Assembly: GCA_937625935.1 (NCBI GenBank)
Contig: OW569365.1
Span: 248,001-312,000 of the forward strand
DNA length: 64,000 bases
Direction of reading: 5' to 3'
Origin: Tetramitus jugosus
Taxonomy: Eukaryota > Protista > Heterolobosea
Positions within the stretch are counted from its first letter, which is position 1; each line of letters opens with the position of its first letter. Of the stretch, positions 98 through 51,091 are shown one piece after another. The notes beneath the pieces were generated by a model. It did no database searches, was not told the DNA's origin, and saw nothing but the letters and a program-made list of their open reading frames with translations. Made by a program: the position numbers and the translations under genes.

Positions 98-2775
98 TTA
101 TACTGCTTCAAAGAGTTCTGCCCATTTCTTCTGCAATTCACCAAAGTCATCCACAATCTCCTGAATCTCTTTCACACGTCTCACAATTCTCAATCTCCTT
201 CCCTTGGCTTTGATGTTGAACTTTTCTTCCCACGTTGATTCACAGTCTCCACTAATCGAGAGCAAATCTTTCACAGTTTCGATGCATTCCTCCTCAAATA
301 CAGAGAAGATGGTTTCAAGTCCTTCAGGTTTGTCTTCCCCGGCCTCTGAATCCTCAGTTCCATTGGTTGTACTCTCCTTCTTGACAGGAGTAGACACTTC
401 TGTCCACCACTTGTATTCATTATTCAAATCCAAAATCCAATCTTTGGCCTTTTGCATTGCCTTCTTTGGACAATAATCGAACAGATCGGTATTCTCATCC
501 AACTTTGGACACACTTCACCAGTATAAATGTTAATGAGATCTTGTGGAGATGGTACTTCCAGATGATGATTAGGTGGGTTGATCAAATGTTCGTCCACCT
601 TACTCAACAGCTCCTCCAAAACGTCTACTCTCTTGTCAGCAGTACTTGTATAGTATCTTTGCTTGAAAATGTTGAGGAATTGTTTTAACTCCATAAAACT
701 GATATCTAACTTAGAAACAGACCCAACCAATCTCTTAACAATGACATCAGGCACATCGACAAAATGGAACTTGAATAATCTCTTGACTTCAGCTGGTGTA
801 ACAAGTTGGAAATCTGCCATAGCAGCCTTCTCGTTGCTCAAGACATCAGTAATTCTGTTTATATCAGCAGAAGCAGACACACCATTCTGAGTAAAGAGTT
901 GAGTGGAAGGCTTTGCGCCCAAGTCAAGCACTGTCTTAACTCTGTTCTTCTTGAATGCTTGAATTTGTCTTGCAAATCCAAGACGTTTCAACCACTCTTC
1001 AATTGTAACAGCCGAAATGTTACGCTCCTCCAGTGTATATTGTCGAATGCGCTTAATGAATCCATCCTTCACATTCTCAATACTACCTTCAGGATCTCTC
1101 TTGAATCTGCTAAGATGAGAAAGAATTTGAGCCATGGTCAATTGTTCTCCCTCAGTTTCAAGAGCAACACAAAATCGTTCTGCTTGCTCTTCGGTCGCGT
1201 TCTTATAGAAATGAAGGAAAGCTCCCTTCATCTGTTGTCTTGTAGCATAGGTGAACTCTACCTTGACATCGCAACGTCCAGGCCGTATCAATGCAGGATC
1301 CAGACGTTCAATATGATTGGTAGTCATAAAAAGCAGACGACCAGATTCAGGAGCAGCGATACCATCAATAGAATTAAGCAGTCCAGCAAATGTCACAGAT
1401 CTCTTGTTCTTGTTGGCATCCGGTGTGTTTCTATTCGTGAAAACAGCATCAATGTCCTCCAAAAGGATAACACTTCTTGGAGGAGCAGATTGCATTCTCT
1501 GAGCCAATTCTTCATCACCAATCAATCCACTAGACAAATCCAAGACACAGATATTGAGGTTCAATCTCGATGCAAGCGCAGAGACGAAACTGGACTTACC
1601 TATAAAAGTAAAACAACAAGCAACAGGTTAGAGACCAACAACAATACACAACCAAATAGAACAATAAAAAAATTTCAATACATACCTGTACCCGGAAGGC
1701 CATACAGGAGATATCCTCTTCTGAATGGAATTCCCTTTTCTCTGTACCACTCTTTTCTCTTCAAGAACTGAACAGCATCATCTGATAGTTTCTCTGCTAG
1801 ATCCTTGTCCAAGATCACAGATCCAAAAGGTCTCTTATTCTTTGCGAGTGCCAATGTCCAACCACCCCACTGTTGAGCCACATAGATTCTCACAACATCA
1901 CAGCTGTTGGCCATGGTTGACTTCATTGCTTCTTCAAACAAGTCCAATAGAATTTGTCGATTGCTCATCGACTTCATCGTACCAAACATGTTGAGAGACA
2001 ATGACTCAAACGAAAAGGAAGAGTTCTTGTCATATCCAGTTGAAACAGAGTCGTTGCTCTTGCTCTTTGAGAACCAAAAGAATTTTCCTCGGAATCGGAA
2101 AATGTGAAATCCATCTTCAGGTGTATACTGTACGTGAACGGCTTGACCGTCATCAAAATTATTCTGAGACCAATAGTTCATTCTCTTGATACGCACCATT
2201 TGAGCCACCAGAGAGGGAGCAGTCAAGAAAGAAGCTTCCAACTTGTCATCAAGCATCGCACTACCCGTCTTTTCTTGTTTTCCATTGAGCATATTGTGAT
2301 ACAATGTGTGTTGATTACCCAGATAGGTCATCAACCATGTGAATGCATCATCAGAGTTGTTCAAACTAATTGATGTCACAAATTGCTTCTTGACATAGTT
2401 TTGAATTTGATTGAACATCCAGTAGAAGATGCTCAGTATCGATGTCAGGACACCCAACAATCCAGTCACCAAAAACAAGTAATGTTGCTTTAGAATCAAG
2501 TTCATGAATGAGTCCTTGCTATTGTTGTTCACTGATGATGATGGCAATTTGCTGCCTTGAGTAGCAGTGGTTGTGGCAGCTGCATCATGAATATGCTTGT
2601 TGTTATTGGTTGATGTTTTGTTTGCTTCATCAATCAATTGATTCAACAGTTGATCAATGGAAGAAGACAGAGACGCATGATGCGCAATTCGGTCATAAAT
2701 AAAAGTTGCTGCAAAATAGAAACCAATCAATAGCACAGATGCAATTGACACAAACAAAATGACTCGTTTGACCAT
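98..2775 (-). CDS. BCS1-like AAA ATPase paralog A with C-terminal SAM/lid repeats; exons 2775-1686 and 1599-98, intron 1685-1600
   Basis: Splicing the 86-nt GTATGT...TTATAG intron rebuilds Walker A GYLLYGLPGTGKS. Walker B ILLEDID, SRH MTTNHIERLDPALIRPGRCD and the BCS1_N region (WLMTYL...PEDGFHIFRFRGKFFWF) are present. Start placed at the ATG of MVKRVILF. Two N-terminal hydrophobic segments. Confidence 0.88.
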
Positions 2776-3074
2776 TGTGTGATATGATGATTCTTTTGTT
2801 GTTGTTGTTGTTGTTTTGGTTTCCGAAAGTGGTTGTTTTTTAAAAGAGAGAGCTTTTGGTGTGAAATTTTGTGTTCGAACTTTCATGTGGAAGGAACTGG
2901 GTTGAGCAGAACTGGATTTCTGCCGAATAAACATGAAGTAAACAATTGCGATTTGAAGTTCACCAAAAATTTGTTCCACATTCCAGCTCTCTTTTCGACT
3001 CGTTCACATTTTTAACAACTCACCGGTGAGAGAGAATCGCAAAAACAAACAAGTCCAAAAAACAACAAAGACAG
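2776..3074. promoter_or_regulatory. Putative bidirectional promoter between the two BCS1-like paralogs
   Basis: 299-bp spacer between divergent ATGs, with A/C-rich leader-like tracts pointing outward on each strand. Confidence 0.55.
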
Positions 3075-5369
3075 ATGAACCAAACAACATTTGCATCAAA
3101 TTTTACAACATCTTCTGTTGTTGGTGGCAGTCGACTCAATGCACTTTTTTCAGTGATTGCTACAGATTTGGCGGGAAAAGTGCTCGCCAATGAATACTTG
3201 ATTACGGCGGGAATTTTTCTCATTTTCGGAGCTGTGAGCACAGTGTTCTACTATCTGTATTACTTGTTTTTGGATCTGTTTCAGAGAGCTTTCATCGTGA
3301 CGGTCACAATCGAAAACACGAGTGAATTGTTCGATTGGTTAGTGAGATGGTTGTCTGAACAGGAGCAATCCAAGAGCTTTCTGCATTCGACTACAACGAC
3401 ACTGCAAGTCTATGTCAAAAAGTTTACCACAATGGACTTTTGGGACAATATCGATGGAGATGACTCTGCAAGTACCTCGATTGAGTTGTTGCCTGGTCCA
3501 GGTGATCATATTGTTCGCTTCAAGAACAAGAATGTTTGGGTCAGTCGTGCCAACTCGTCCAAAGTCGTCACAGTTGGTCACAACAACCGTCCATTTGTCA
3601 AGGAATATCTCTCATTGTCAATTTATGGCAGAGATCACACATTGTTTACAGATTTGTTCGATGAAGCAAGAAAGATGAGCATGATGAAAGATAATGAAAA
3701 AACAAGAATTTATACATTGCACGAATATGGATACAAGTGGGTGCTTGCCAATGCAAAGGATCCAAGATCCTTTGAGAGTGTCATCCTGGACACAAACATG
3801 TCTCAGAGCATTGCTGATGATGCCACTGAGTTCCTCACATCAAAGGATTGGTATCTGTCTGTTGGTTTGCCATACAGAAGAGGTTATCTGTTGTATGGTC
3901 CTCCAGGTTGCGGTACGTACCCCTATTTTCTTCTATTTTCCTTATTGTTCTGTTTGGTTGTAAGTTTCTAACCTTGCTTGTTTTTGGATATATCTCTTAT
4001 AGGTAAGACTTCTTTTGTTAGTGCATTGGCTGCCAAGATGAACCTCAGTATTTGCTGTTTGACATTGTCAAATGACTCGCTGGATGATCAGTCATTGAAT
4101 GAGCGATTGCATGACGCGCCTGGAAATGCCATTATTCTCCTGGAAGATATTGATTCGGTGTTTATTGAGAGAAATGTAGCTGACTCACACAGCTCCAGAG
4201 TCACATTCTCTGGTTTGCTCAATTCTATTGATGGTGTTGCATCGCAAGAAGGTCGCTTGTTCTTCATGACAACTAATCATATTGAAAAGTTGGATCCTGC
4301 ATTGTTAAGACCTGGAAGATGTGATGTGCGTTGCGAATTCAAGAGAGCAAGCAAGAAACAAATTTCAGACATGTTCAGTCGTTTCTATCCTCTGTCTGAA
4401 TACAGTTTTGTGGATGAAAAATTGGTGAACAAATTGCTAAACTCAATCCCAGAGTACACTGTACCTATGGCTGCACTACAGGAACATTTTATGAGATACA
4501 GAGAAGATCCAAAGAAGGCCGTGGAACGATATCACGAAATTCTTGCTGAGACTCAGAATGATAGCAGTGATTTCCTTATCACTTCAGATGATGCTGACAA
4601 GAACACCAAGGATGAAACTTTAACACAAATTGAATCTACTCCTGAAGGCAGAAAAGAAATATTTGGAGATGAATTGTTGGTTTGGCTCACACGACTGGGC
4701 TTCAGCAAGCACATTGCCAAGTTTAGAGAAAAGAAGATTTATGACTTGTCAGATATGAAAGACATTGAGGTTGCCGATCTTGAAGAGTTTGATTTCAAGC
4801 AACTTGGTGATAGACAACGTCTGATGGGTATGTTACAGGGACGGAAGGATGTTGTGGCAGATTTTGAATACGCCACAACCTCTCAACTCGAGAAACTATT
4901 TCTGATCCAATTCCAGAATGATACTCAATCAGAAAAATTGTCTGCTCAATTTGTCGCTGCGCTCAATGGTGTTGCGGTGAGTATTCACCAAGTGAAGGAC
5001 CATTTATTCCAGCATGCAAACGACATTCAAGCAGCAGTCGATTCTGTTTCAATTCTCAGAAACCCACCTCAATCCATTGAGGATGACGAGAAGGTGAAGA
5101 AAATCTTTGACAAGGACATGTCGATTCGTGAATGGATGACGTCGGCAGGACCAAAGCATCTTGCATCACTTGGCACTGAACTCAAGGAGCAAATCATTAA
5201 CAATTTTGCTGCAGAAGAGATCATTACTCTGGAGGACCTTTTGGAGCTGAGTATGCCATCAGACCTGAAGGGAATTGCCAAGGTGGAAAAGAAGGGCAGT
5301 ATTCTGGCCTTTGAGCGAGCTCTCGAAGAGTTGAAGAAGAGCAAAGAAAAGGTTCAAGCGGAGAACTGA
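3075..5369 (+). CDS. BCS1-like AAA ATPase paralog B with C-terminal SAM/lid repeats; exons 3075-3912 and 4003-5369, intron 3913-4002
   Basis: Splicing the 90-nt GTACGT...TTATAG intron rebuilds GYLLYGPPGCGKT. Also ILLEDID, VTFSGLLNSIDG, LDPALLRPGRCD, BCS1_N (LFDWLVRWL, PGPGDHIVRFKNKNVWVSR) and one N-terminal TM helix. Confidence 0.9.
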
Positions 5370-5775
5370 ACTTGAGCGCGATTGGCCCCTGAGCGTTTTA
5401 CCAATAAAATACTCCCGCCGAAACGGGCCTTGAATCCGGAGTTCGAGACAAAATACGTGTTGCGGGTATCAAAATCTCATTGTAAAGCTTGCCTTTTGAC
5501 CCGATTCGTCAAGAGGCGATTTCTTCACCCGTAAAACACGTAAAAAGCCCAAACAACAACCCCGCCTCCAACCTCCAGTGCGAACCAACTCATCCACAAA
5601 CCATTCGACACTTAAAAAACGAGTAAACTCTCTTTTTCGCTGTCGTGTTTTTCTTTATATCGTGTAGTAACTACCATCACCCTTACTAGCACAATTCAAT
5701 TACTACTTACTACTCACAGTACTCTGTACAGAACACACACATATAAGTTATTACTACTTGTAATTCATCATCACC

Positions 5776-8124
5776 ATGTTTAGCCAATTATTGTACGGCA
5801 ATGGTGGTAACACCAACCACCCTCATCACTCTCCAACTCCACAGCAGCAATCTCAACCAGCTCAACCGCAGCAATCTCATCACGCAACTGCTGATGGCAC
5901 TCACTTGTTTGCATTGGACAACAGTCATCCTCATCATCAATTGCTCAGTCAAGCTCTTTCTCTGCAGGAACAGCAACAGCATGTGATGAATTTGATGTTG
6001 CAGAGCTATGCTCTCTCTGGTCATCATCTCCCGCATCCTCATGCGCATCATTCCCCTCATCACCCGCATGCGCATCACCCCCATTCGCATCACTCATCAT
6101 CTCCTCACTCCAATGATGGCAGTCCAGTGAACAACAGCACTTCACCATCATCTTCATCACAACCATTCTTACCCTCTCTTGTACATACATTGCCTGAGCA
6201 CAAGACTAGCACTGCTGTTGACACAACTTCTGCTGCTACTTCTCCCAGTAACAACAGCAGCAACAACAATAGCTCTCACAACAGCAACAGCAGCAGCATT
6301 TTGGTGTTGAGTGATGAAGATGTCGAATTCCTATCACAGTCCCATGCACCAGACTATGTCAATGATAGAAGTCACCCATCTACTGCTGCCGCATCTGCTG
6401 CGACCACTACTTCTATGGATGGAATTGTGTCTCAGTGTGTTCCACAACAGTACCACCAGGCAACAAACCATCAACGGTCGCCTCATTCTCAACCATTGAC
6501 TAATAGCAATGAACCATTCAATTCAGCCACACCTGGTATCATTCATGAACAGTTCAATTTTGACACTGTTCCCAACAATTTCCTGTCTGTGATTCAAGAG
6601 AAGCAAAGAATCTTGCAAAAGAGAGAAGAAATGCAAGAAGAGCATCAAGCGGCTCAGAAGCAAAGAGATTCTCGCAAGTCGTCATCCTCTTCCAGTAGTG
6701 GAAGTGAACGAATGGCCTCTCCAGAGTCCTCCTCTCAATCCTCTTATGGTGGTGATTCTCCTCAAAGGTCCAATACTCCACTTCAAGAATCCTCTCCTTC
6801 CAAGGCTCCTGCCAACAGAAAGAGATCCAGAGCTCAAGTCGAAAGCGACCAAGTTGAGCTCGAAAAATTGTTGACTGTTCCTGAGAAGGAAAGAACAGAA
6901 CAACAAAAGAAGACCATTTTGAAGTTGCGCAACAGACAGACTGCCAAGAGATCTCGCGACAGAAAAAAGCTTGAATTTGAAGCCACCATTGAAGAGAACA
7001 AGAAACTTGTTCAATCCAACAAGCAATTGGCTGATCAAGTGAAGAAGCTCAAGAATGAGAATGAAGAGCTCAAGAGAACCGTTGATTTGTTGACCAAGGG
7101 CCACCATGGAGCCATGGCTGCCGCTGCTCTTCACCACCATCATCACCAACAACAGCAGCAACAACAACGCCCTGCTTACTTGACTCCTCAGGGCAACATG
7201 GTTGACTCTCCAGACTCTTTTGTCACATTGACTGTTGCAGATGACAATGTACCTCACCAAGAAGATGATATTGAGCAAATGATGAATGGTGAGTTTGACT
7301 ACTTGAACCACACTGATCCAATGGGTCAACCAAAGGGATTTCAGGCCTTCTCTCCTCTATTCACCTTCCAGAACGAGTCTACCAATCATCCAAACAAGAA
7401 GAGCAAGATGTTTATGCTTGTGTTCTTTGTCGCATGCATCTGCTGCTTCTTCATTGGAACTACATTGGTCAACGAGTTGCCATCTCATGCCATTTTGATG
7501 AATGCCAACAAGAGCTCTCCAAAGCGCCACAAGGAAGTTCGTTTGTTGAACACTCATCTCTACAAGCACACTTACATTCCACAGAATCCATCCACTTCAT
7601 TCGATGATGCTATCAAGAACATTATCACTCAACATCAAGACCTTCAACAATCATCATCAGCATTGCCAGCAACAAATGTTGCATCTACCACCACTGTCAA
7701 GACTCTTTCTGAATCTGCCTCCTCCAACACAAAGCAAGCTCCAGTTGCCATTGAAGTTGTTGAAGAGGTTGTGGAGGAATTGGTTGAAGAGATTGTTGAA
7801 GTCAAGGACGATGAGGAAGTTGATATCAAGGACCAATTGGAAATCTCCAACAACCACAAGAACAACATGATGTCTAATGTTGATGTCCATGTGAATCCTG
7901 ACTTGAATCAGTGGCTACAGGAGCAACTCAAGGTCTCATCCTCTGATTCAGTTCCTGTCATGGTCAAGTTTGACATCAATGACAAGACATCTGCATTCAT
8001 TCTCACATCCATGGACAAGAACTTCACTGAGGAACAACAGAAACTCTTTGTTTCCCAGTACAAGACCTCATTGATCTCTGACATGCGTGGCGTTTGTCCT
8101 AGACCATTGAAACTCATCCAATAA
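5776..8124 (+). CDS. Membrane-tethered bZIP transcription factor (ATF6/CREB3/bZIP28-like topology)
   Basis: Basic region KLRNRQTAKRSRDRKK plus heptad zipper, then a single TM segment MFMLVFFVACICCFFIGTTLV and a C-terminal domain of about 210 aa. Confidence 0.85.
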   Translation: MFSQLLYGNGGNTNHPHHSPTPQQQSQPAQPQQSHHATADGTHLFALDNSHPHHQLLSQALSLQEQQQHVMNLMLQSYALSGHHLPHPHAHHSPHHPHAHHPHSHHSSSPHSNDGSPVNNSTSPSSSSQPFLPSLVHTLPEHKTSTAVDTTSAATSPSNNSSNNNSSHNSNSSSILVLSDEDVEFLSQSHAPDYVNDRSHPSTAAASAATTTSMDGIVSQCVPQQYHQATNHQRSPHSQPLTNSNEPFNSATPGIIHEQFNFDTVPNNFLSVIQEKQRILQKREEMQEEHQAAQKQRDSRKSSSSSSSGSERMASPESSSQSSYGGDSPQRSNTPLQESSPSKAPANRKRSRAQVESDQVELEKLLTVPEKERTEQQKKTILKLRNRQTAKRSRDRKKLEFEATIEENKKLVQSNKQLADQVKKLKNENEELKRTVDLLTKGHHGAMAAAALHHHHHQQQQQQQRPAYLTPQGNMVDSPDSFVTLTVADDNVPHQEDDIEQMMNGEFDYLNHTDPMGQPKGFQAFSPLFTFQNESTNHPNKKSKMFMLVFFVACICCFFIGTTLVNELPSHAILMNANKSSPKRHKEVRLLNTHLYKHTYIPQNPSTSFDDAIKNIITQHQDLQQSSSALPATNVASTTTVKTLSESASSNTKQAPVAIEVVEEVVEELVEEIVEVKDDEEVDIKDQLEISNNHKNNMMSNVDVHVNPDLNQWLQEQLKVSSSDSVPVMVKFDINDKTSAFILTSMDKNFTEEQQKLFVSQYKTSLISDMRGVCPRPLKLIQ

Positions 8125-18685: not shown

Positions 18686-19404
18686 ATGATGAACAACAAT
18701 AATAATAGCAATAGAAAAAGAAATGTGTCATCATCATCCATTGACAACAACAACAACACCATGTATCACCAACCACAATCCTCATCCTCATCACTAATCG
18801 ATGAAGAAAATCATATGAGTCACATGATGAATCATCACTATGCTCACATGATGATTGGTGAAGATGAAGAGAATGATACCAACCACAGCAATAACAATGA
18901 GGAAGAAGAAGCATTTGATTCAACTGTGAATCATCATCCCTTCCATCACCACTCCATTTCTACTCCCACTACTCCATCATCACCTCCATCATCATCATCA
19001 TCATCATCCATCACAACAACAGCAACAACAATCAGTGCATTCAATCAATTCAATAAGAATACAAAAATGCAACAACAACAACAACAACAACTCTCATCTC
19101 AACAGAGAAACAAATCATCATTATTAGTGAACAATACGAATAGCAATAGCACGAATAATATTACTAGTAATCATATGAACAATACTCATACCAACAGTAA
19201 TAATAATAATAAAAGAGACGGTAGAAAGAGACATCATCATCATCACAGTCAATCGAAGCGAAGTCACGAAAAAATTATTCTTCCAGGTCAAGCTGCTCAC
19301 ATTCTATTGAAATGTGGTGACTATAGTAAGTTTATGAGACCAGATCGATTGAATTGGCAATTTGATCACTTGAACTCTAAAATTCAACGCTCTTCTCACA
19401 TGTC

Positions 19405-19436
<32 letters not shown>

Positions 19437-20330
19437 CATGCATCTCTACTGATCACAACAATAAGAGTGATCATGTGAATGATGATGCCGATGCAATGCA
19501 TAATGTTGATTATCAACCTACTGAATCATCTCAATGTCCCATGCATCATCATCACCCACAACAACAACAACACATGAACAACAAGAGTGATACTGATAGT
19601 AGTAGTAATAACAACAACAACAATCATAATAGTGATGAAATTGTATCAGTGCTCTCAGTCAGTTATCACACTTGTGATTTTTTGAGTCAGCGCATTCATG
19701 TGTTGGATGAGTCGAATCTGTACTCTTTTGATCACTATCATCATCACCATCACCATCATCATCATCACCATCACCTCCTCCACCACCACCACCACCATTT
19801 TCATAGTCACTCTAATAATTATCCATTCCACTCATCATATCATCACAGTAGTAGTCATCCACATGGCTGCTGTGAACAACATTATTATTCATCACTTGAC
19901 AATTCCCCTCGGTCTTCCGTATCATCGTCCTACATTGCTGAAGCTTCATCATCATCACTAGAGTACAATCATGTGGATGATCATCGATATGAAGATGAGA
20001 GTGAACAGGATGAAGAAGTGGATGAAGAGACAATGGTTGTTGTTACAATAGACAACAACAACAACAATTCTTCGGACAATATTGGATCCATTCTATCTAT
20101 TCATCACAATCATAATACGAATAGTAGCGGCAGCAACAATAAGAATAAGCATATTCCTGTTGTGAACAAACTGGTGAATCAAAAGTCGCAGCAGCTTCAG
20201 AGGAACAAGAGTTTGCCCATTGCTAGAAAAAACAAGAGAAGAACACAACGGTTGCTCCATAGTCAATACGACGGTGGAGGAGGTGGAAGTGGATATGATG
20301 ATACGGGAGAGGACGATGATGAGGATTCGT
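18686..20330 (+). repeat. Dense trinucleotide microsatellite tracts (AAC/AAT, CAT/CAC, TCA, CAA) encoding poly-N/H/S/Q
   Basis: For example, the poly-His run near 19733-19800 and many poly-Ser and poly-Asn runs. Confidence 0.85.
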
Positions 20331-23300
20331 CATCTTCCATGTTGCATGACTACCTGTCTGCATCATCCAATCTCCTATCATCTTCACTCTCTCCACCCAC
20401 GAATCCCAGCCTATACAGTTATCCATTCTTTGAGAATCAGAAAATGGCTGGCAGTAGTATGGTTGGTGGTGGTATGAGCAACAGCAGCAGTAGCACGAGT
20501 ATAGCCAGTGCGCTTCACACCAAGATGACTGATGAACTGTTGTTGCATCAATCTGGTGCCCCAAATGTACCAATATCACTTCCATCCAGTTCATTGGTGG
20601 ACACAATGTATGAGACAAGTTCGCAGATCATGGATAGTGTTGTTGGAGGTTCATCCGCCTCCAGTTCATCACCCGGTCTACTTCTCGTTCCTAACACCTT
20701 GCTCCACACTGTGTACTCAAAGTATTCTCTGGTTTTGTCTGTTGACATTAGTCCCAGCATGGCCTCTGTTGATCCGGTCACGGGTGATATTTTGTTTGAT
20801 CGTGTATTTGGAATTATCCAAAAGATGTTACATGCACTGGTGCAGGAGAATATTGTAACAAGTGACACTGCACCAGAGTTGCACGTGTCTATTATTGCAC
20901 TGGGGTCCATTCATAAGCCAATTCACACCATTTGTCAAGATGTTGTCATCAACAGTCAAAATTTGGATGAATCTCTGGAGGATATAAAGGAGCGTATTGC
21001 TCAGGTGGAGATACAGGCAGCTGATGCCATGAAGGATATGCACAATGTCAAGAAGAGAGGATCATGGATCAACTCTGATTTTAATCTAGTCATCTATAAT
21101 TCGTTGTTGGCGTTCGATTTCCTTCCAGTAGATGCTTGTCCATGCCTTGTTGTCATATCAGATGGCTGCTTTACTCTGAGTGAACTAAAGATTGATGCAG
21201 TGATGAAGTTGACTCATTCTGATGTTAGCTTCGGTATCGTTAATATCAGTGGACGCAATCATCACTCTGATTTCCTCTACACCTACATACCGAACACTGA
21301 GTTGATGGAGTACATTACTGAAACAGTTGGAGGCGTATACATTGATTATTCATTCTTCCAATCTGGTGTTTCAGATGAGGAAGAATCTCTCGCTGAGCGA
21401 TATAGGAGCTATCTTCTTCAATCGTCCTTATTCTTGAAACTCTCTGATTTTCAAGTCGGAAGAGAGTCGGTGCTTGCTCGACTCAAATATTTGTTGAAAA
21501 CCCTATCGAACAGTAGCGTGATGACAGACACTATTGGACAGAAGGATGATTTGGACAATGACTATGGTGGAGGCAGCAATGCTCTTATGGCTGAGTATTC
21601 TCCAATTGATCCCATGCAACAATACATGGTGGACAAAATTAAGGAGTATAAGATTTGTAATGTCGATATCAAAACAATCCTAAAAACAAGAATCAAACAA
21701 GGGTTTCGAATTGTTGATATAGAGTATGCCACGGATGAAGATGATCCAAGTATCGGACTGAAATCAGGAAAGGAGATTTTGGATCCAAAGTTTGTTGTTC
21801 TTCGCTTCCGCTTAAGACCGCGATGTGAGATTGAGTATCATCTGACTCTGAACAATGTGGCTTCGGGTGTTGGATCGAGCAAGATGGACGACAAACCAAA
21901 GTTTAGAAAGCGATCTTCTAGTGCTTCCTCTTCGCTACCGACATCTGTATTGCCTTTAGATGTGAGAAAGAACACGCAAATCTCAGTTCAGATATATATG
22001 AACGCGAGTCGTATTTTCCACGATCGTTACAAGCTGTACAAGAAGAAATATTTGAGCTCAGGTGTGGCATCGGGACCATCCGGTTCCTCAACTAGTAACT
22101 CATCCTCAAAAAAGGATACACTACAGCAGCATAACACTAGTCTAAGAACAATGGCTTATAACACCGTTGCAACGTTCGTTCAGGCCATGTATAACGAGGA
22201 TAGAATGGCCGAGCAATTGCACATGATTGCCGAGGCCGGGCTATCAAAGAAGTTGTCGTTCACGTTGCCCAACAATGAAGGAAAAGCAAGCATGAGCTCC
22301 TCCCTCGATGCGAAGTCACAATTGAATCTGACATCGCAACAACTGCTCTTCTTGAAGGAAAAATCATACCTCTTTGATGAACAATCGATTCTGGTCAAAG
22401 TACCATCTAGTATCGATATGCCTAATGCAAGAAGCTGGGAGAAGTCTGGTGAGTATCTAGTTCAGGCTCTACTGGTACAATCAGGCATCAATACATCGGT
22501 ACCTGCATTGCAACCTCAACAAACCCAAAAGTTGCTTGGATCATTCTCGGGCAGTGGTACGACCACTAACTCAAATACGGGTACTGCTGGCAATACAAAC
22601 ATACCACTAACGAATGATACAATTTATCAACACTCGGTAGTTCTTCTGAGACACATATGCACTCAATTTTGGGCATCCACTCGGCTATCTGATGACTTCT
22701 TCATCAAGTTTGTTCAGGTGGCTGCTCCAGATGAGTTCACAAGTGGAAGAGCTAGTGATTCTTATTTTGAGAAGAACGACAGCGGGTCAAGATCGAATCG
22801 AACCTCTCTGACATATGATCCATCATTCTTGCAGATAGGTAAGTTGCCACCAAGTGCAGGCTTCTGTACACTCAGATTGGTTTGGCACTCGCCATACGTT
22901 GTTGAATTGTTTACCAACTTTTTCAACGTGCCCACAACCACCCGACAGCAAGTCGTATTACAGCTCCAATGTTTGATACAGACAACCCTTTCTCCTACGA
23001 GCGCTACCTCAACAGCCCACGGTAATGCAAGAAGTCAGGCTGCTGCAACAAATGCAACTGCGGCTCTTTCAGTGTACACGACGAACAATCCGTTACACAA
23101 GATTTTGAACAAACTACCAAAGTGTCGTGATGGAGACGAAATTCAATATTACAAGTCTCTATTTTATCATCCACCACATTATGGAAGCTACTTGCACCAT
23201 AAGAAATGGATTTGGAATCTAGAGGATGCAAGAATATTGTACCAAATCCTGTCCATGCTGTTTGCTCAGCGATTGAGGGAGGGATACTCACTCATTTACT

Positions 23301-26300
23301 TGCATTATTCTGCTATATTCCATAAGGTGATTCGATTGCAAAATGGAGTCAGCAACTCAGATGATCGTCCCTGCAATTTATTTTACTGCGTACACATTCT
23401 CAAGTCAAAAAGAATTATCACTGAAATATGGGTAGAGCCACAATCAGGTGAGTTAGATTTCGATGACTATTATATCACTGAGCTGGATATAGTTCAAAAC
23501 TTAAGAGATTGGATTTATATGGTTGATTCCGATATTATGGGAATGTTTTGGACTTTTAACAAAATATATCGCTCTTGTGATAGCTACAAGTCTGTTCAGA
23601 GCGATCAGCACCGTGTGGAGATGATTCAGTTCGGAAGTGACTGTCAATTTTCGTTGGACAAGAATGATTTCATGGTCATTAGTAGCAACATGAATAGTCT
23701 TTTCCGTCATGGACAATTCAATAACGCAATCATTCAATTTTTACATCCCCCAAGTGTCACCTCTGATGTCATCGTGAGTCACAACACAAGACGTTCGAGT
23801 GCCACCACAGAGAGTAATGATGTTATGATTGTGCAACAAGCGAATACCAAACTTTACGAGAGATTGACAAAATTAATTTCTCTGTTAAGTGAAGTGGAGG
23901 TTCCTTTGGACACATCCAACATCCAACTATTAAGGAAGATACTTCCTGGTAGTCAATTGGCCTCCCTCGAACCCCAAAAGTCGAGATGCTTCGTGAAGCT
24001 GGTTTCGACAGACAATGAACGGCACCATCACCTAACTGAGGAAGTAGAGAAGGCATTATTATTCACAATCATCCCTAATGGTTTCTCTTCTCTGGAAGAC
24101 CTTTTGGAGATAGTCATCTGTGAATGCAAAGAATCTCACCTCTCCAACATTGTCAACATCATAGAGCCTCCAATAGACGATCTTGTCATTAATCGTCTCT
24201 TCTCACTGAAACAATCTCTGCCTAACTCCAAGAGCACTAGTACTCTGTCAAGCTTGGGAGTGAGCAGCAGTCACGAGGAGATTGCACAGTTGCAAAAAAT
24301 TACTACTTCGCCAGAGTGTGAGAAATATCGAGATTTCTTAGCATCTTTCCATTCTATGTCATATGCGTATGGAGTCTACAAGTGCCTGCAAATGCCTAAT
24401 CAGCAATGTGTGGACTTGAAGGTATTTAAGACAGCTGTTGAGGCCTGTGTCGAGTATCGAGAGGAAATCGATTTAACGGAGCTATTTGAAGCAATCTTGT
24501 TGAGTCAAGACTATTTCTTCACTCACGTACCTAATCGTGAAAAGAGTCCCAACGAAGACATGAACGCTTACTTTGCAAAGATTTTACAAAAATTCTTTGA
24601 AAAGGTGCCCGGTACTGATCATCATTACTATTATAAAGATAGATCAATAGACAGTGGAAGAGGATTGTTGTCAGATGAAAAGGGTCTTACAAGAAAGAGA
24701 GGTAGCAATGTATCTCTCATCGCTGCTGCAAAGCAAGCACCTCCAAAAATTCAAAAGACCACCTCGGATCATTCCGAGGATATTCTAACTGACGACCAAT
24801 TTACGAATATTGAAGAAGAGGACAAGCAAGATGGCAATAGTGATATGTCAGACGAGGTTCAAAGTGTCACATCAGGAGGTAGTATCGCTGGAGCTTCTAA
24901 TATCTATGATAGTCTATCTGAGGCAACCTATATGTCTGAAACAAGCAATAATTCCTTTGCTTTCAGAGATTCTCCACATGCAGCCCAGCTAGACACTCTC
25001 AATATTCCAGTGTTTATGCGTATGGAGTGTGTTATCAGTGAATCTGAAGATATCTATATTGATTATGACGAGGATGATCGACCAATTGAACCAGAGCAGA
25101 AGGAAATTATTTATCCGGTCAACGACATTCCTGTTGATAAGATCACTGCCTCATTCAAGAATATTGCCACTCATCTTCAAACGAGCGAGGAAAGTGACAC
25201 ATTCAGTAATGACAACGATTTGAACGCCATTCTAAACCCCCACAGCATGTCCATGTCAGCAGCTGCCGCGAACGATCCTTCATCATGGATATCAAAGATA
25301 TCAAACATGAAGAGCTCACTGCGTGTTTATTGCATCACGTTGCCACCTGATAAGCTTATTGCTGCGATGGATGAGTTTGAACCACAAAGAAGAGACATCT
25401 TCCAATACTTGTACAAATTCCATGATGACAACCAATTTAGCTTTGCCAAGTCAAAGTTCTCAGCCAATGACATGCTCGAAACAAGTGAAGGTAGCATTGA
25501 GTATGACGATATTACGGATGAAGACTCAGAAAATTTTGATGATGAGGCATCCCATCCAAGCAGTTCAGCTCCATTTTTGCCCAAGCACTATTTACCTAAT
25601 CATCTGAGAAGGACAATGACTGGCATGAAGAAGAGATTCCAGGCTTTGATTTCTAAGGAGATCCTCAATGCTCTGCTTCACTCCAATCCCATTACTCCCT
25701 ATGTTGTGAAGAAAGTTTTTGATAATCTCCCAAACTTGCCAACCAGTTGCTATCAAAAGTACCATATTAATCTCGAGTTTATCAATGGGAGAGACGGTGC
25801 TCGTTTGTTCCAATCTGAAATTGCAAAGTGCAAAACAGTGATATTCAAAAAAATTGGAGATCAATATGTAACTTACTTCAGAAAGACTAGCGCAGAGCTC
25901 TCCGTTTCACCCTACTACGCATTCCAAGAGAACCAAACAAATGACCAACCATCGAATGTTGATCATGTAGAAACTGGATACGAGAGTGATGAACTGCCCA
26001 ACTTCTCTGTTCAAGCTCGAGCAACCACTGGCGATTTGTCCGTTGATGACGTTCATTTTTATGATAAGGAGGCTGTTGATGTAGATCGAGCAAATCTTGA
26101 ACTTCCGTATTGGATCGTTCTGTCATTGGCCAACTCTGTTCCCAATAGAAACACGAGACAGCTTTCTATTGTGTTCTATTCGCCATATCCTATCACATCA
26201 GAATGTAAGAACAGAGTAACACATTTACTGGAAACTGTAATTGCTGCTGTCGCAAAGCGTGTCAACACATTACTATTATTGAACAATCTGCACGACACAA

Positions 26301-29300
26301 GATTATGCAGCTCTTTATTATTGCCGATATCAAACCAAGACAGAGTATTGGAAGAACGTATGGGAGGACTCGATAGGAACCCTATCGACAGCAAATTGCT
26401 ACGAGCTTCGGATCCTAACTGTGCCTTCAAAGAGGGATGTCTTTCGTGTCCAATAGTTCATACGATTCGCTTCAAGTTGCACCGTCGTCTTCAAACTGAC
26501 CTCGCAATGAGAACATTGGTTTCGACGGTGTTCCATCCATTTGTTGTGAGTAATAGAACGAATGTGTTTGTGTATCGAGAGAGGAACGGACATGTGTTTT
26601 ATATGCGACTGTCTGACCAAAAGCAAAATCAAAGCTCTAAAGCTGAACAGGAAGATACTCAACATGGGGAAATTGATACCATATCAGACACTCTATCAGC
26701 ATCTAGGAACTATTCTCTGTCGTCTGCAACCATGGGACAGTATCTGATCGCAAATCTCAATATTAACAATACGAAACAACCATCGTTGATTCTGGAAGTT
26801 TATGGAGTCAATGTTCCAAGTGCTGAGATCACAAATCAATTGCAAAACTTGATGGAATCAAAGATATCAGCAATGACACTCAGTATTATCTCTAACCTAC
26901 TCCTCAGAAATACTCAGTACAAGTTAAATATCGAAGACTTGGAGTTTATTAGGCCTTCTACCAAAAGACCCGAGAAAGCAGTGATCATCGATATCCCACC
27001 AATCATCAATAACATGCTTTTATATTTGCTGATTGCAAGAGAAAATCTTCAGGAATACTTGAATAGGCTCTACCTGACCAATGGTTCTATTGCTACTCCT
27101 GCTACACTTTCGAATAGTCAGCCTCTCACAGAAGAAAACAATGACCTCTCATCGGGTCACTCTCAGGTTGAAGATGATGGAAATACTCTTGCATTTAAGG
27201 CATTAGAATTTGCCTTCTTGTATAACTCAGTTCCACAGACATATACAAGATCAATCTCTTCGCCTGCTATTTGCAAAGGTATTTCATGCATACAGTTCAC
27301 AGTGCTCAACTCCCAAAACAAAATGGTTCGACTATTTAAACCTGATGAACTCGATGCTGAAATTTCAACACCAGATAGTTTATCGACTTGGAGTCTATTA
27401 CAAGCCAAGCCATGCAACCTACCATACAACTCTCTGGGATACATAGAATTGGAGAGTGAGGACTTGTCCGGTGAAGAAACGTCTGATGAAGAACTGGACA
27501 ATGAATCATTTGAAGAGCTAGATCAAATTCCAAGAAAAGTCAAATCCAAACCAGTAACTGACTCTAGCTCCTCTCCGCGACAACTCCTGATTGAGATGTG
27601 GAGAAATGGTGACATTGACTTGCAAGCATTGCTCGATAGGATTGTACTCACCTTGAATCAAGCAGTATCAGACTACATATTTGAAGAAAAACTGCTTCGT
27701 CCACCGATTGAACTTGTTTCATATCGAGAGCGATTCTTGATGCCATATCAATTGGCATGTCGAAGAGCGCGACAAGTTAGATCACAGTCGACACATGAGT
27801 ACAGACAATCCACGTTTCTGCCAGTGTGGGAGATGGATAGATTCTTATCAAAACTTATTGACTTGCTTAACCACAAAGCTCACATGCATCCAATTATACT
27901 ATCGAGCATCGATGGAAAAGCCACCTCCTTCCAAGTGTATGATAAGGTGATGAAGAGTAAAATTGCTCACAGTGTCGGTAGCAACAGTATCTGCTTCAGC
28001 ATCATTGGTGGTCTAGTGAGTATCGCAGATGGTGACAAACTAGTGAGCTCTGTTACGAATCCATCAGACTACAAGAGTATTGTTTCTCATGCTCAAGCCT
28101 CTTACAAGAAATCAAGATATCAATATCAACGAAACTGTGCAATCATGATTACGGTGACTAACGTCGAAGTGCTTGCTTTTGCTTATAATTGGAAGACTGC
28201 AGATTTTGACAAATTCAAAATGTCTCTCAGTAAGTTGATATCTTGGACAACATGCAGAGTTCTGCTCCTGAACTCTATTCTTCATCAGAAGATGGGTCTA
28301 TTCTATCACAGCAAATCTAAAAATTTGACACATTTCGAGGATGATTCTCAAAAGGAAGATGTCAAACTTACTTTTAGTAACATTGACATTCTGATATACA
28401 ATCAACCAGAACCAAGAAAACAGTCACATCAGCAGCAACAACAACAACCGACAACAACTATCCAACCTCCTGTGAACCCCAATCAACAAATGATTGCCTA
28501 TGGAAAGAATGGTATTCCAAATAGATTTGCAAAGAACAATCCTATGGTCATGCAACAACAACAAAAGAGAAGCGAGCCGCCTGTCATCCAAACGAAACAA
28601 AAATCATCTCGATTAGATGTTCAATCATCTCCCTCCTCTAGATCTGCCAAGAAGTCCTCATCACGCTCCTTGAAGGTCACTAAACACTTTGGTTTCTTAT
28701 TGCGTGGGATACAAGACACCTCTCAAAGCAACTCCATTAATCCAAAGGTGCAACTAGCGGCCGAACAGAAATATGATCCTCTCTTATCTCACGGCAATGC
28801 ATTCAAGAATATTGTACACAGGAATCAAAGACAACTGCAGGAGAAGCATCATTTGGCACACATTTACTCTCGATGGAACAATACACAAGCATCTGAGGCG
28901 ACATCACAACTTTTACCCTCTGACTATCAGCTAATCAAGAACAACAGTAGGTTGTTCCACTACTGCCGAGTTCCTCTCTTCTTCAATCCCTTGAGAAGAG
29001 TGCTCTTTAATCCTCAGTTCTCAACGAATAGTGCTGTACTGTACAACAAGAGCAAGTCTATTGACTCTACAGGAATGGCAAACATGAGAGAGATTGGACA
29101 TCACAAGAAAGTATTCGAAAGTTTTTTGGGTGAATATGTGATATATATTGACTCTTTGGGAGTCAATGGCGTGCACGTGTATTCTGAGACCAACGAAGAC
29201 AATAGCAGCTCTTCATCTGGTGCTGGGCACGCGGACAATGGACCAACACGATCTGCGAGATCAAATAGTCAGAAGAGACCAACGAGCAGTGAGTCATCAT

Positions 29301-30619
29301 CCTCTCAAAGATCAGCTCCAAAGTCAAAACATATCTCAAAATCCAATGATCTCATCCATAAGCCTCGACCTCTCATTCAAATTGATGAGGATATTTTCCA
29401 ACTACCACCAACAACCGTCTACTTCCAAAAGTCTATGAATGGTGGTACGCTCTTTATGGAATTGGGATTGGATTCAATTTATGCCTATCTGAATGTCTAT
29501 ATATCCGATCCACCGGTACTTAGTTTGAATTCTGAATTGTATGACTCTCGATCGACATTCATGGAGAAGGCAGCTCAATTTAAGCATCAACTCCATATGA
29601 ACTCGTTCGCATACGATTTCCACATTCGAAACTTCCACAATTACATTAACAATGAGCAAGCAGAGTATCCGACAAACTTGAACTTTATCGATCTGATCAA
29701 TGACTACATTCAGTTCTATCCAAACACTCCAATCTATTCTCGCAATGTTCTCAAGCAACATTCGGTACCAATCAGCAACGTGAATGACTTACTGGAACTG
29801 AGCGAACAAACACAAGAGAGAACAACTGGTAGTCCTTATCAAGGCTTTTTCGACTATATTTGTGCCCACGCAAATCGTTATGGAATACTGTGCACCAAGA
29901 AATTGAAAAATTGTTTCATACTTGAGAGATTCAAGCCACAACGTGATATCACATCGAACAACAGAGAGCTCTATTCTTATTCAATCATTGCCTTGATTGA
30001 TAATGAATCACCTGAGTTGACAATACGACTCTATGTCATCTATGTGAATACATCCACATCGCAACCATATACAACAAAGACGGCTGGATCAAAGAGCAGT
30101 GTCGAGTCCTCTGTTCAACACATTCTCGACGAATGTGAACAAAAGTTGAAACAAGTGTTGGTTCAAGCCAAGAATGACTACAGACTTGATACTCTATGGA
30201 ACATGGCCTTGACGTTCAAGCTGAATGAATCTTCTCTTGATCAATTGAAGAGAATATGTCATCGACTGCCATTGAAGCACATTGATCGAAGCTTGGACTG
30301 CTTTGATAGTGTGTACGCTCCGTGGGCCAACATCTTGTCTGAACTGTGGACCACGTATGGTCACTCAACATGTGGTAGTATATTCAAACAAGACGGGTCA
30401 TGTCAATACCTGCATATCAGATGTCCTCAAAACAGTGACATATTGATTCATCTGGAGTTCAGAGTTTTTGAGAATCATGTGAGAGTCTACCTGTTCCGCA
30501 AGAATCGTCTGACCAACATGGAACGAAGCTGTACAGAACTGGAAGCTGACTTTATTAGTGAGTTTGTGAATCACGTATGTTCCATGCTCTGGAGAATGTG
30601 TCTCTGGCGAAGCTCTTGA
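18686..30619 (+). CDS. SZT2: SZT2-like giant scaffold (KICSTOR subunit), 3977 aa, apparently intronless
   Basis: Size; vWA-like LVLSVDISPSMASVD; RIKQGF and RLREGY motifs; SILHQKMGLF; LHMNSFAYDFHIR. The N-terminal ~600 aa are low complexity, so the start is uncertain. Confidence 0.8.
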
Positions 30620-39389: not shown

Positions 39390-40565
39390 TTACAATTTTG
39401 AGTCTGGATCTTTTGGCTCAGATATCTGTCCTTGGAACACAACAACACCAGAGGGAATGTGTCGAATGAAGAACAAGAATGGCTCGTTCACAATAAAGTC
39501 CAACGATTTCGAGACCACCTTCTTTCTTTTGAACCTGACAACCGTGGCTGCCGCAGCTTCAGTCCCTTCTTCATCTACTACCACAAATGTCTTATGAATG
39601 ACCTGGTCAATATGCAAAGCGGTTGACTGGCAAATGGCACTAAAGTCTGCACTGTCATCGAAAGGTGAAACCATACCCATCTGAATCAGCGTCTTCTTCA
39701 CAGAAAGCTCCGACTCCACTTTAAACTTTGGCAACGCTAAGACGCTAATCTTTTCCGTGGTTGAGTCATTAAAGTCAATAGATTGCAAATTGTCCTTGAC
39801 TAATTGAAGTGCAAATGATTTCGAAGGCAGAACAACAATCATTTCACATTCGTCTCCCTGATAAGGCAGGTGCACCCATTTTGCGAATGTGTTCTCACCA
39901 TATTGAAACTCCTTTTGTTTCATTTTCATCATTGGTACATCGACAGAGTGCTTTGCCGTCTTGAAGAACAAGTCTGGTTGGGTGAGATTCTTGTCAAACT
40001 GATGCTTCCAACTCTTCTTGAAATAGATGGCATTGACTAGCACCATACGAGTCAAATCATCAGACGACAACAAGGGAGCACGCAAGACATTTTGAATCTT
40101 GTTGTGTGTTGCCTCTTGAACCCACTTGTTCACCACTTGCACACTCTCTGCATTGCTAAAGTCCAGTGATTGACACTTGGTTGCAAATGAACCTTCAGCC
40201 TTCATCATCAAGCAATCCACATAGGACGGCTCCAAATTCATTCCCTCCTGAATGAAGACACCATTGGCCAATTCGACATTGTTCTTTGATAGAGCTCCTC
40301 CCTCAATTGCCTTCAGGTACCACTCGTTCAATTCTTGTAGAGATGAGTGCTGCTGTTGCTGTTGCTGACCGACTGTGTTTCCCTTGGATAAAACAGCCAC
40401 CATTTCACTCAGAGTCTTGCCCTTGGCACCGTTTGCAGCCATCAGCAATGCAACAAAGACAGACAGACCCGAAATGAACAAGTTGTTGTCTGATGTGTCA
40501 TTCAGCAACAGACTTGTGAATAGAGAATCAGAAAATGGATTGGCAAGGTTTGCTTTTGCAGACAT
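39390..40565 (-). CDS. Serpin, inhibitory type, no signal peptide, C-terminal SKL
   Basis: NLFISGLS, VNKWVQEATHNKI, VLVNAIYFK, LPKFKVE, hinge DEEGTEAAAAT, FIVNEPFLFFI. Confidence 0.95.
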   Translation of the reverse strand: MSAKANLANPFSDSLFTSLLLNDTSDNNLFISGLSVFVALLMAANGAKGKTLSEMVAVLSKGNTVGQQQQQQHSSLQELNEWYLKAIEGGALSKNNVELANGVFIQEGMNLEPSYVDCLMMKAEGSFATKCQSLDFSNAESVQVVNKWVQEATHNKIQNVLRAPLLSSDDLTRMVLVNAIYFKKSWKHQFDKNLTQPDLFFKTAKHSVDVPMMKMKQKEFQYGENTFAKWVHLPYQGDECEMIVVLPSKSFALQLVKDNLQSIDFNDSTTEKISVLALPKFKVESELSVKKTLIQMGMVSPFDDSADFSAICQSTALHIDQVIHKTFVVVDEEGTEAAAATVVRFKRKKVVSKSLDFIVNEPFLFFIRHIPSGVVVFQGQISEPKDPDSKL

Positions 40566-48311: not shown

Positions 48312-51091
48312 ATGTCATCCAATAGACCGAGTGGAGAAGAGAGAATAGAAATATTTTGTAGATTTAGGCCAGTGTCCAAGTCTTCAACTGTTTCAACTTA
48401 CAAGATTGCACAAACTTTTGATAACAGCACTATTGAATTCTTGAAACCAAAGCAACACGGAGTAGGACATGTGAATAACTCTCGGGAGACTTATGATTTT
48501 CAGTTCAATGGGATTTTTGACACGGACGTGACTCAGGATGATGTTTATGATCGTTGTGCAAAGAAGTGTGTCGCGAGGTATGTGCCTTATCTCTTTTTGA
48601 TACTTGGCGTTTGAATAAATCTAATCCAACTGTTTGTAGTGCTCTCGAGGGTTACAACAGCACCCTGTTTGCCTATGGACAAACGGGTAGTGGTAAAACT
48701 TGGACCATGACAGGTGGAAGTGTTCATTACAAGGATAGAGGTGTCATTCCGAGAGCTATTTCTCACATTTTTGAGGAGATTGCCAACCGACCCGAAGTGG
48801 AATTTAATCTATACGTGAGTTACATGGAAATATACAATAACCAACCTTATGATCTACTTGATAAAAACAGAGACATTAAGGATTTAAAGGATCTGAAGTA
48901 AGTGATTCTGGTTGGATTGTATGTTGTACATGATGAAATGTTATTGAACCGTGATTTGATTTTCTAAAGAAAACTAGTTTTACAAGAAGACAAGGAGGGA
49001 ACTATCCATTTCAAAAACTATCATCCCATACCCGTTAGATCTGAAGAAGAAGCTTTAGAAATACTCTTTGTTGGAGACCAGAATAGAGCACTCTCAGAAA
49101 CTCAGATGAACGAAGCTTCTTCTCGTTCTCATTGTATATTCACTATGCATATTGAATCAAAAGCCCCAAATTCGAACACCTTCAAAGCATCAAAGATGCA
49201 TCTCGTTGATCTTGCCGGTTCAGAAAGAGTTTATAAGTCAGGATCAACAGGTCAGACCCTAAGTGAAGCCAAGAATATTAATTTGTCACTTCACTTTCTA
49301 GAACAAGTTATTGTAGCTCTCTCTGAAAAACAGGAACACATTCCCTATCGAAATTCAACCATCACTTGGTTGTTGCGTGATAGTTTAGGCGGAAATTGCA
49401 AAACAGTAATGGTAGCTACTCTCAATCCCTCAAGGGAACATTTGGAGGAAACTATCTCAACTTGCAGATTTGCTCAAAGAGTGGCATCCATTAAACAGCA
49501 AGCTATGGTCAACGAAAGAGTTGATCCTGTTGTCCAAATTACTCAATTGAAACGAAAAGTGGTTCAATTGGAAGAAGAATTGGCTTTCTTGAAAGGCGAG
49601 GGAAAAAATAGAGAAGAAATTGACAACAACGAGAGGGCGATCATTAGACAAAAGGTAGAAGAATATGTTGCAGACAAAGATAATCTCTCAGAATTAAATT
49701 TGGGAGGAGATCATTTGAGAATCAAAGAAGCCTTTATCATATTCAAACAATTGTTAATTCAAGCGAGAAAGAAACGGCCTGGGCCAAGTTCAGAAACTAC
49801 GAACATAAGTGTGGAGATTGAGAAGACTCCTCAACAAACTCCTACAATGAAGCCTCAATCCAATCCAATACAAGCTCAAGTTGTTCCCATAAGTATTCAA
49901 GAGCAACTGAAGAACCTTACACTAGGTGTCGAGTTGCGAGACCGAGAAATTGAGATATTGGTGAGCATGTTGGACAAAAAGAGTAAGGAAAGGAATGAAG
50001 TGGCTATCCAAACGATGGACTATGAATCAGGAGTTTCCAGGACAGAACTTAGAGATTTTCCAGTAGAACGAAGCGAAGATTCAACTAATGAGAACTTTAC
50101 TAAGGAAACGATTAACAATCGAATAGAAAAAGAGAAGGAAAGGGTTCTTCGAACCTCAAAGCCAACCTATGAGTATTCAAACGAAAAAGTCATGCAGTTG
50201 GCGAGTACTCATGGAATGATTAGTAGGGCGAAAGCTTTTGAAGTGTTCCGGAAGAGCTATCGACAAAATAGTGTAATAGAAAAGAACAAGTCGTTGCTGA
50301 AAGACAAAATCGACGAAGCAAAAGGAATAGGAAAAGAATTAGAACAAACCAAGTACTTCGTCAACAAGTTAAAAGAGCAATTAGTTAGACGGAGAACTGA
50401 GAGAGCAGCACAAGGTCTGATGAACCCAGATAAAGTGTCAAGTGAAGATGAGGATGAAGAGAGGATAAAGGAAGAGATGATTGAACAGCGGGACCAATAC
50501 AACAAACTGATGGAACGAATGCAAAGTTTAAAGAAAGAGATCAAGTACATGCAGAACGCCCTCAAGAGCAGCGCTGAAAAAGTACAAAAGGACTTCCAAC
50601 AGTGGTACGCCACCACACATGGTCAATTTGATGCTCAAGATTCTTCGACATATCAAGACAACATGGATAACTATAACACTGAGAGTGATTTTATTCCGAA
50701 GAAAAAGTCAACTGAAGAGTCGCCCAGAAGTTCGCTACGAGCTTCACTAGAGGAGTCGACAAAGTCATGGTCAGACACTAGAAGTGTGATGAGTAGTTCC
50801 ACTGACAGATCAAGTGCCTTATCTACTGCAACTTCACGGAGCAATCTTTCTTCACTCTATTCCTATCAATCAGGTTCAACAAAACCTGATCGAGATATAG
50901 ACGTGCGCCAAGCATGGGGAGATCCAGTCAAGGAATATGATTCAACATCAACTAAGGATGGATCGAATGATTTCAAATCACGACTTGGCTCTTACTTGAG
51001 CATGAAAACCAATGTGCAACGAACGTCAGAGCAAACATCGAGTGTCCAGCCTAAACGGATGAGTTTGTTGGACAGAGCTCGGAATCTGTAA
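48312..51091 (+). CDS. KIF6: Kinesin-9 family motor, KIF6-like; exons 48312-48577, 48640-48897, 48970-51091
   Basis: [19 protein letters not shown]...[41 protein letters not shown]. Two GT-AG introns restore the frame. Confidence 0.88.

Follow-up and report, generated by a model that had tools for sequence, protein, structure and literature searches.

Bcs1/BCS1L, the translocase of the Rieske Fe-S protein, is the textbook example of an AAA motor carrying a folded protein across a membrane; to date it is known with a single substrate and as a homo-heptamer. Additional members of the family have different or unknown roles: Aspergillus fumigatus provides a precedent in further Bcs1 homologs with no part in respiration (PMC10672213), and plants have an expansion of BCS1-like proteins, the outer-membrane ATPases of the OM66 type (PMC11965440). 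Here we describe two long BCS1-family genes, A and B, that lie head to head at positions 98 to 5369 of a 64,000-nucleotide stretch of DNA from Tetramitus jugosus, and that offer a natural test of whether evolution has turned this type of motor to other cargos or membranes, and whether it can build higher-order or mixed assemblies. The whole stretch, referred to below as the window, is C22:248001–312000 of a 26.35-Mb genome in 56 contigs, and positions are numbered from its first base.

Gene A, on the minus strand, encodes 863 amino acids. Its exon 1 (2775..1686; 363 codons plus 1 nt) carries the start of Walker A, its intron (1685..1600) is 86 nt long with GT..AG ends, phase 1, and a CTAAC branch-point-like site, and its exon 2 (1599..98; 499 codons plus stop) starts at the second base of the Walker A glycine codon. 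Gene B, on the plus strand, encodes 734 amino acids in exon 1 (3075..3912; 279 codons plus 1 nt) and exon 2 (4003..5369; 454 codons plus stop), with a 90-nt GT..AG intron of phase 1 (3913..4002) at the same glycine, so that in both genes the codon is split after its first base (G/GT AAG). The two start codons are separated by 299 bp (2776–3074). RNA was available from four libraries, one oligo-dT and three soil metatranscriptome, and in all four the spliced contigs had joints that skipped exactly 86 nt in A and 90 nt in B. Each of these samples contains separate, spliced mRNAs of both genes. The initial annotation, made from the letters of the DNA, had described a divergent BCS1-family pair 299 bp apart with introns at an identical phase-1 position in Walker A; the gene models and Pfam domains bear out the pair, and the RNA joints confirm the introns. 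Database searches were run exon by exon, and two proteins from transcript-sized contigs, each 98% identical to its counterpart, served as full-length proxies for spliced A (P0144, 865 amino acids) and spliced B (P0001, 734 amino acids). Both are continuous over the splice junctions (GT-G-KS and GC-G-KT, respectively), and P0144 aligned with all 499 residues of gene A exon 2, of which 491 were identical. A conserved polyprenyl synthase encoded in the window is most similar, among named proteins, to those of Naegleria fowleri (65%), N. gruberi (62%), Acrasis kona (61%), Willaertia (57%), and Percolomonas (53%), which places the organism among the heterolobosean amoeboflagellates outside Naegleria. 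It recurs in soil and groundwater samples.

The motor part of each protein is that of a BCS1 ATPase. Pfam searches found BCS1_N, AAA, and AAA_lid_BCS1 in both: BCS1_N (PF08740) scored 83.3 bits in A (1798–2382, minus strand) and 116.8 bits in B (3291–3800, plus strand) against a cut-off of 28.1, and PF00004 and PF25426 were over the cut-off in A and B alike. The intact Walker and second-region-of-homology motifs reported for both genes could be read directly from them: Walker A is GLPGTGKS in A and GPPGCGKT in B, and Walker B (ILLEDID), sensor 1 (FMTTNH), and the arginine fingers (RPGRCD) are complete in each. The strong divergence noted between the two proteins is also real, at 32–35% identity. 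The top solved relatives of A and B were the Bcs1 structures 6u1y, 6ukp, and 6sh3 (E 1e-38 to 1e-34). In B, where the AAA core (4005–4340) is followed by a first lid (lid1, 4341–4538), similarity to the solved Bcs1 structures ends with the lid, at residue 177 of the 454 encoded by exon 2.

Beyond this point lie 270–320 amino acids that are not in any solved Bcs1 structure. The shared extra C-terminal architecture that had been noted in A and B can now be made specific as a SAM domain (SAM1), a second BCS1-type lid (lid2), and a second SAM domain (SAM2). In B, a disordered linker (4539–4667) precedes SAM1 (4668–4844; PF00536, 32.5 bits against a cut-off of 23), which is followed by lid2 (4851–5060), also recognized by Pfam as AAA_lid_BCS1, and by a SAM-like SAM2 (5118–5327). 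In A, on the minus strand, SAM1 (830..1009) carries the motif WLKRLG, which is nearly invariant across the subfamily described below; next come a lid-like lid2 (581..823), a 60-residue insert specific to the A subtype (401..580) with conserved Cys residues and the motif EYKWW, and a SAM2-like domain (161..322) identified by subfamily alignment and profile. The lid1 of A aligns with the lid2 of B. Alone, the SAM domains of A score 14–20 bits, under the Pfam cut-offs, and they were assigned through the subfamily alignment. The EYKWW motif is also present in the related proteins P0007, P0008, and P0129.

Several results show the tail to have arisen by tandem duplication of a cassette composed of the AAA lid and a SAM domain. 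A profile of lid1 plus SAM1 matched a profile of lid2 plus SAM2 with a probability of 99.8% (E 6.8e-28, hhalign). The lid2 plus SAM2 profile matched solved SAM domains, including those of Caskin-1 (4e-10), EphA2, SARM1, and tankyrase, and it matched the Bcs1 lid as well. An AlphaFold2 model of lid2 plus SAM2 of B had a predicted local distance difference test score (pLDDT) of 91.9, and the first half of this model superposes on the Bcs1 lid at 1.4–2.7 Å; the models of B show helical bundles at 222–277 and 374–423 with pLDDT of 82–97, in agreement with the compact five-helix fold of a SAM domain. An alignment of 34 sequences revealed this tail layout in A, in numerous protist proteins, and in a third long BCS1 gene of the genome. 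A Foldseek search with lid2 plus SAM2 gave no match at E <= 0.001, and its matches to the Bcs1 lid were short yet consistent; a look-up of the tail in the ESM Atlas returned lid-like clusters only, with scores of 0.81 or less, and was uninformative.

A tail-only search of 1.84 billion representatives gave only 31 relatives, those with names being from Acrasis and Percolomonas; longer searches added Stylonychia and an Oxytricha-like ciliate, and many unnamed protist proteins also combine BCS1 with SAM domains. A full-text literature search found no paper that links BCS1 with SAM domains. By their sequences, A and B are members of a protist BCS1-SAM subfamily that is undescribed in the literature searched. 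This subfamily is itself the firmer novelty of the locus, and its architecture sits in public data under the label "mitochondrial chaperone BCS1".

The genome contains six genes with a BCS1_N domain: A, B, three of canonical length, and one further long gene. Canonical Bcs1 was defined by a length of approximately 420–480 amino acids and an end just past the lid, a range that both A (863) and B (734) exceed. The three canonical-length genes are on contigs C5, C15, and C38 (loci L002, L003, and L004, respectively); of these, the C5 and C38 proteins group with animal and fungal Bcs1 in an AAA-domain tree, with weak support (85/65). The N-terminus encoded by the C38 gene is Arg-rich and presequence-like. 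The further long gene, on contig C43 (L006:58-2130, minus strand), is an intronless BCS1-SAM paralog of 690 amino acids that is unlinked to A and B; its ortholog P0124 (53% identical) comes from the same metagenome sample as L014, one of two contigs on which a relative of the A/B pair was found (see below), and is unlinked in that organism too. Because three canonical-length genes exist outside the pair, a separate Rieske translocase is very probably present in the genome, and the role beyond complex III assembly that had been proposed for A and B is plausible.

The AAA-domain tree also bears on the age of the A/B split. A and its two orthologs group with Percolomonas P0132 (94/87) and the EYKWW-bearing proteins, whereas the closest neighbors of B and its orthologs are P0004, Acrasis P0013, and Percolomonas P0009; the C43 protein pairs with P0124 (100/96). 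A and B lie outside the clade of animal and fungal Bcs1, C5, and C38, with a weak backbone (72/53). Forcing A and B into an exclusive clade cost 13.9 log-likelihood units and gave P = 0.034 in the approximately unbiased (AU) test, a marginal rejection for a group specified once the tree was known. Percolomonas carries both subtypes, P0132 being A-like and P0009 B-like. Because the tree does not place A and B as sisters and the AU test disfavors an exclusive clade, the best reading of these sequences is that A and B represent two old subtypes and are not a lineage-specific duplicate.

The shared intron could be taken as the sign of an old duplication. Here the age of the paralogs stands, on the tree and the AU test, and the intron argument does not. 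The A and B orthologs on the two contigs that carry the pair (L014 and L015) have no Walker A intron, nor does any other BCS1-SAM gene examined; the Acrasis gene has only a small N-terminal intron and none at Walker A. In the short paralogs C5, C15, and C38 the intron is of phase 0, directly after the Walker A lysine and 5 nt past the A/B position; the C5 splice junction was seen in RNA (with loose ends at 3907). An intron at Walker A therefore does not mark the family as a whole, and because the orthologs lack it, it cannot date the duplication. The A and B introns are themselves alike, with approximately 80% identity over approximately 60 nt, more than the 60–62% of the coding DNA that flanks them; the corresponding z of 7.1 against shuffles overstates the significance, since the shuffles do not keep the T/G-rich composition. 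The intron may have been copied recently between the paralogs at an AG/GTAAG proto-splice site. A mobile "introner" was also considered and was rejected, because neither intron has a second copy in the genome by BLAST.

The linkage of A and B had been proposed for checking in relatives, and it was found in some of them. In both L015 (B ortholog 72% identical) and L014 (57%), an A ortholog stands head to head with B, across spacers of 280 and 243 bp, respectively. At the loci of more distant lineages the linkage did not hold: the B-like gene has no BCS1 neighbor in Acrasis kona (P0013) or in a Percolomonas-like contig (L017, carrying P0010, the sister of Percolomonas P0009), and two further BCS1-SAM loci of other lineages were also unpaired. 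A search of Joint Genome Institute metagenomes with an A-specific alignment, made for wider synteny, returned only a transcript-size contig. Conservation of the pair is real but does not clearly exceed the local microsynteny.

The divergent promoter region of the window (2776..3074, 299 bp) holds GAACTTTC at 2877–2884 and TTTGAAGTT at 2952–2960. The latter 9-mer is common to all three spacers; shuffled spacers shared 0.01 such 9-mers on average. Each spacer also has one GAAnnTTC, with a chance of approximately 0.07–0.09 each; a heat-shock element was considered on this account and dropped, because there are no three-unit arrays. In the four RNA libraries, A contigs ran from 79–95 up to 2571–2739 and B contigs from 3066–3153 up to 5380–5530, and none covered 2740–3065. 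The two divergent transcripts do not overlap, and less than 1 kb separates their starts, which is the arrangement expected of a bidirectional promoter. By k-mer depth, the A and B contigs stood at 115:108, 17:10, 17:14, and 33:19, about 1.1- to 1.7-fold apart. Of the co-expression predicted earlier, presence in the same samples held up, and co-expression is weakly supported; organism abundance confounds any correlation of A with B between samples.

The two subtypes differ at their N-termini. B has a single, moderately hydrophobic, Bcs1-like transmembrane segment (3195–3251), as do B-like proteins. A has the usual transmembrane segment ahead of BCS1_N (2425–2481, minus strand) and, in addition, a signal-anchor-like segment (2707–2763, minus strand) followed by an S/T/N-rich linker. 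This extra segment had been pointed out before, and it is real: it spans residues 5–23, with a Kyte-Doolittle value of 2.5, it is conserved in the A orthologs, where it follows directly after MVKR or MRRQ as in A itself, and similar segments start other proteins of the A group too. Very hydrophobic N-terminal segments of this kind act as endoplasmic reticulum (ER) signal peptides or signal anchors, and SAM domains are typically cytosolic. The A-subtype N-terminus hints at a non-mitochondrial membrane, and because an ER-anchor-like segment is combined with domains that are usually cytosolic, we infer that the motor and SAM tail face the cytosol, at least for A. The contig of gene A from oligo-dT library X1 ends early, at 2571 (codon ~69), beside a SMART-type cDNA primer sequence; the other libraries extend gene A to 2739, and P0144 spans the whole open reading frame. 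The early end could be an internal 5' end, in which case the isoform would lack the first hydrophobic segment (the next Met being at approximately residue 91), or it could be a library artifact.

Taking these results together, we favor, with moderate confidence, the interpretation that A and B are anciently split BCS1-SAM subtypes arranged on one spacer of approximately 300 bp, and that they are likely membrane-anchored rings that move folded proteins. Each chain consists of a transmembrane segment, BCS1_N, AAA, and lid, followed by a SAM-lid-SAM tail derived from tandem duplication of the lid and SAM. Judged by family membership, each of A and B would most likely assemble into a ring of the BCS1 type and use ATP for the movement or extraction of folded proteins at a membrane. 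The job would be other than Rieske translocation and complex III, which the three canonical-length genes can cover. The ATPase and SAM tail would be directed toward the cytosolic side, the SAM modules may provide ring-to-ring or partner contacts, and the common promoter would probably co-regulate both genes. Some observations weigh against this interpretation or parts of it. The Kelch gene that lies beside the A ortholog in L014 has a 69%-identical counterpart approximately 6 kb beyond gene A, so that selection is not needed to explain why the pair was kept. Genes cannot be ranked by contig depths such as these, which derive from metatranscriptome assemblies; the case for co-regulation is one of geometry and one conserved 9-mer; and the whole-exon model of B leaves the arrangement of its domains uncertain (predicted template modeling score 0.41).

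The two genes might instead be linked for reasons of function or of history. If they were obligate partners, forming a putative mixed AAA ring or separate A and B rings joined by SAM-SAM contacts, with the promoter matching their amounts, then one would expect the head-to-head pair to be kept, as it is in three genomes with spacers of 243–299 bp and a shared motif. Both mRNAs were present in 4/4 libraries at similar contig depth, both subtypes occur together in Percolomonas (P0132 and P0009), and SAM domains often pair heterotypically. We nevertheless consider obligate partnership rather unlikely: the catalytic motifs are complete in both proteins, with no visible division of labor; in Acrasis and at locus L017 the B-like gene stands without a partner; the third long paralog is unlinked; the signal-anchor-like segment is in A only; and the solved Bcs1 rings are homo-heptameric (PMC10567702, PMC12219900). 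The SAM net charges of A and B were examined for complementarity, and nothing clear or obvious emerged. A more specific proposal, that A and B would together form one putative hetero-oligomeric machine of a hitherto undescribed kind, with BCS1 rings joined or mixed by way of their tandem SAM tails in a non-mitochondrial (ER or secretory) membrane and the motor cytosolic, seems to us distinctly unlikely; if true, it would mean a folded-protein translocase or extractor outside mitochondria. Because the flanking Kelch gene (G000 C22:240855-241940, ~6 kb before the window, with one in-frame TAG in the match, perhaps an intron) is syntenic too, the linkage may be passively inherited microsynteny. 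The pair would then be the remnant of an old local duplication in a gene-dense genome, and A and B would be independent proteins, perhaps of the secretory pathway and of mitochondria, respectively. The absence of the pair at the loci checked in more distant lineages, the unlike N-terminal targeting features, and the low A/B identity agree with this. However, the B-side neighbors have been reshuffled, those of L014 mapping elsewhere or not being found in the genome, and the pair stayed joined; the 9-mer is conserved in 3/3 spacers; and A and B are expressed in the same samples. We regard passive linkage as an improbable account of the pair as a whole. Least probable by far is that A, B, or both are extra isoforms of the mitochondrial Rieske translocase. 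They do have BCS1_N, AAA, and lid, databases name their relatives "mitochondrial chaperone BCS1", and the single moderately hydrophobic transmembrane segment of B is like that of Bcs1. Against this stand the three canonical-length copies, of which C5 and C38 are placed with animal and fungal Bcs1, if weakly, the SAM-lid-SAM tail, and the additional signal-anchor-like segment of A.

Several other genes in the window were recorded. Directly downstream of gene B, positions 5776–8124 (plus strand) encode a long protein rich in His, Gln, and Ser, which has a bZIP basic region and, toward its C-terminus, a hydrophobic segment. Positions 18686–30619 (plus strand) form one open reading frame of 3977 amino acids, a full-length serpin (PF00079, 307 bits) is encoded at 39390–40565 (minus strand), and a KIF9-type kinesin at 49106–51091 (plus strand), which fits an organism with a flagellate stage.

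Compared with known systems, A and B are closest in their motor part to Bcs1/BCS1L (PDB 6SH3, 6UKO, 6U1Y, 9GS2), with which they share an N-terminal transmembrane segment, BCS1_N, and one AAA domain with a BCS1-type lid and intact motifs. Bcs1/BCS1L ends a few residues past the lid, whereas A and B run 270–320 amino acids further, and A, unlike Bcs1/BCS1L, begins with an additional hydrophobic segment. Bcs1/BCS1L is a homo-heptamer. The Aspergillus fumigatus homologs and the OM66-type ATPases resemble A and B as added BCS1 copies beside the one for complex III; their roles are different or unknown, and some of them face the cytosol. None is reported with a SAM domain or a duplicated lid. The same order of AAA, lid, SAM, lid, and SAM, with the motif WLxRLG, is found in Acrasis kona P0013, Percolomonas P0009 and P0132, and Stylonychia lemnae P0031, all annotated merely as "mitochondrial chaperone bcs1"; the loci of Acrasis P0013 and of P0010 are unpaired, and the T. 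jugosus lineage is set apart by the pair and by the Walker A intron. Heteromeric AAA rings built from paralogs are represented by the m-AAA protease Yta10/Yta12, Pex1/Pex6, and the proteasomal Rpt1-6, for which co-assembly was shown experimentally. In these systems diverged paralogs of one AAA family share a ring, as A and B hypothetically might, whereas the known members of the BCS1 family are homo-oligomeric. Finally, the tandem-SAM scaffolds Caskin-1, AIDA-1, and SARM1 also have two SAM domains per chain, and the SAM2 profile matches them with E values of 4e-10 to 6e-5; in A and B, unlike these scaffolds, the two SAM domains are parted by a lid domain and joined to an AAA motor.

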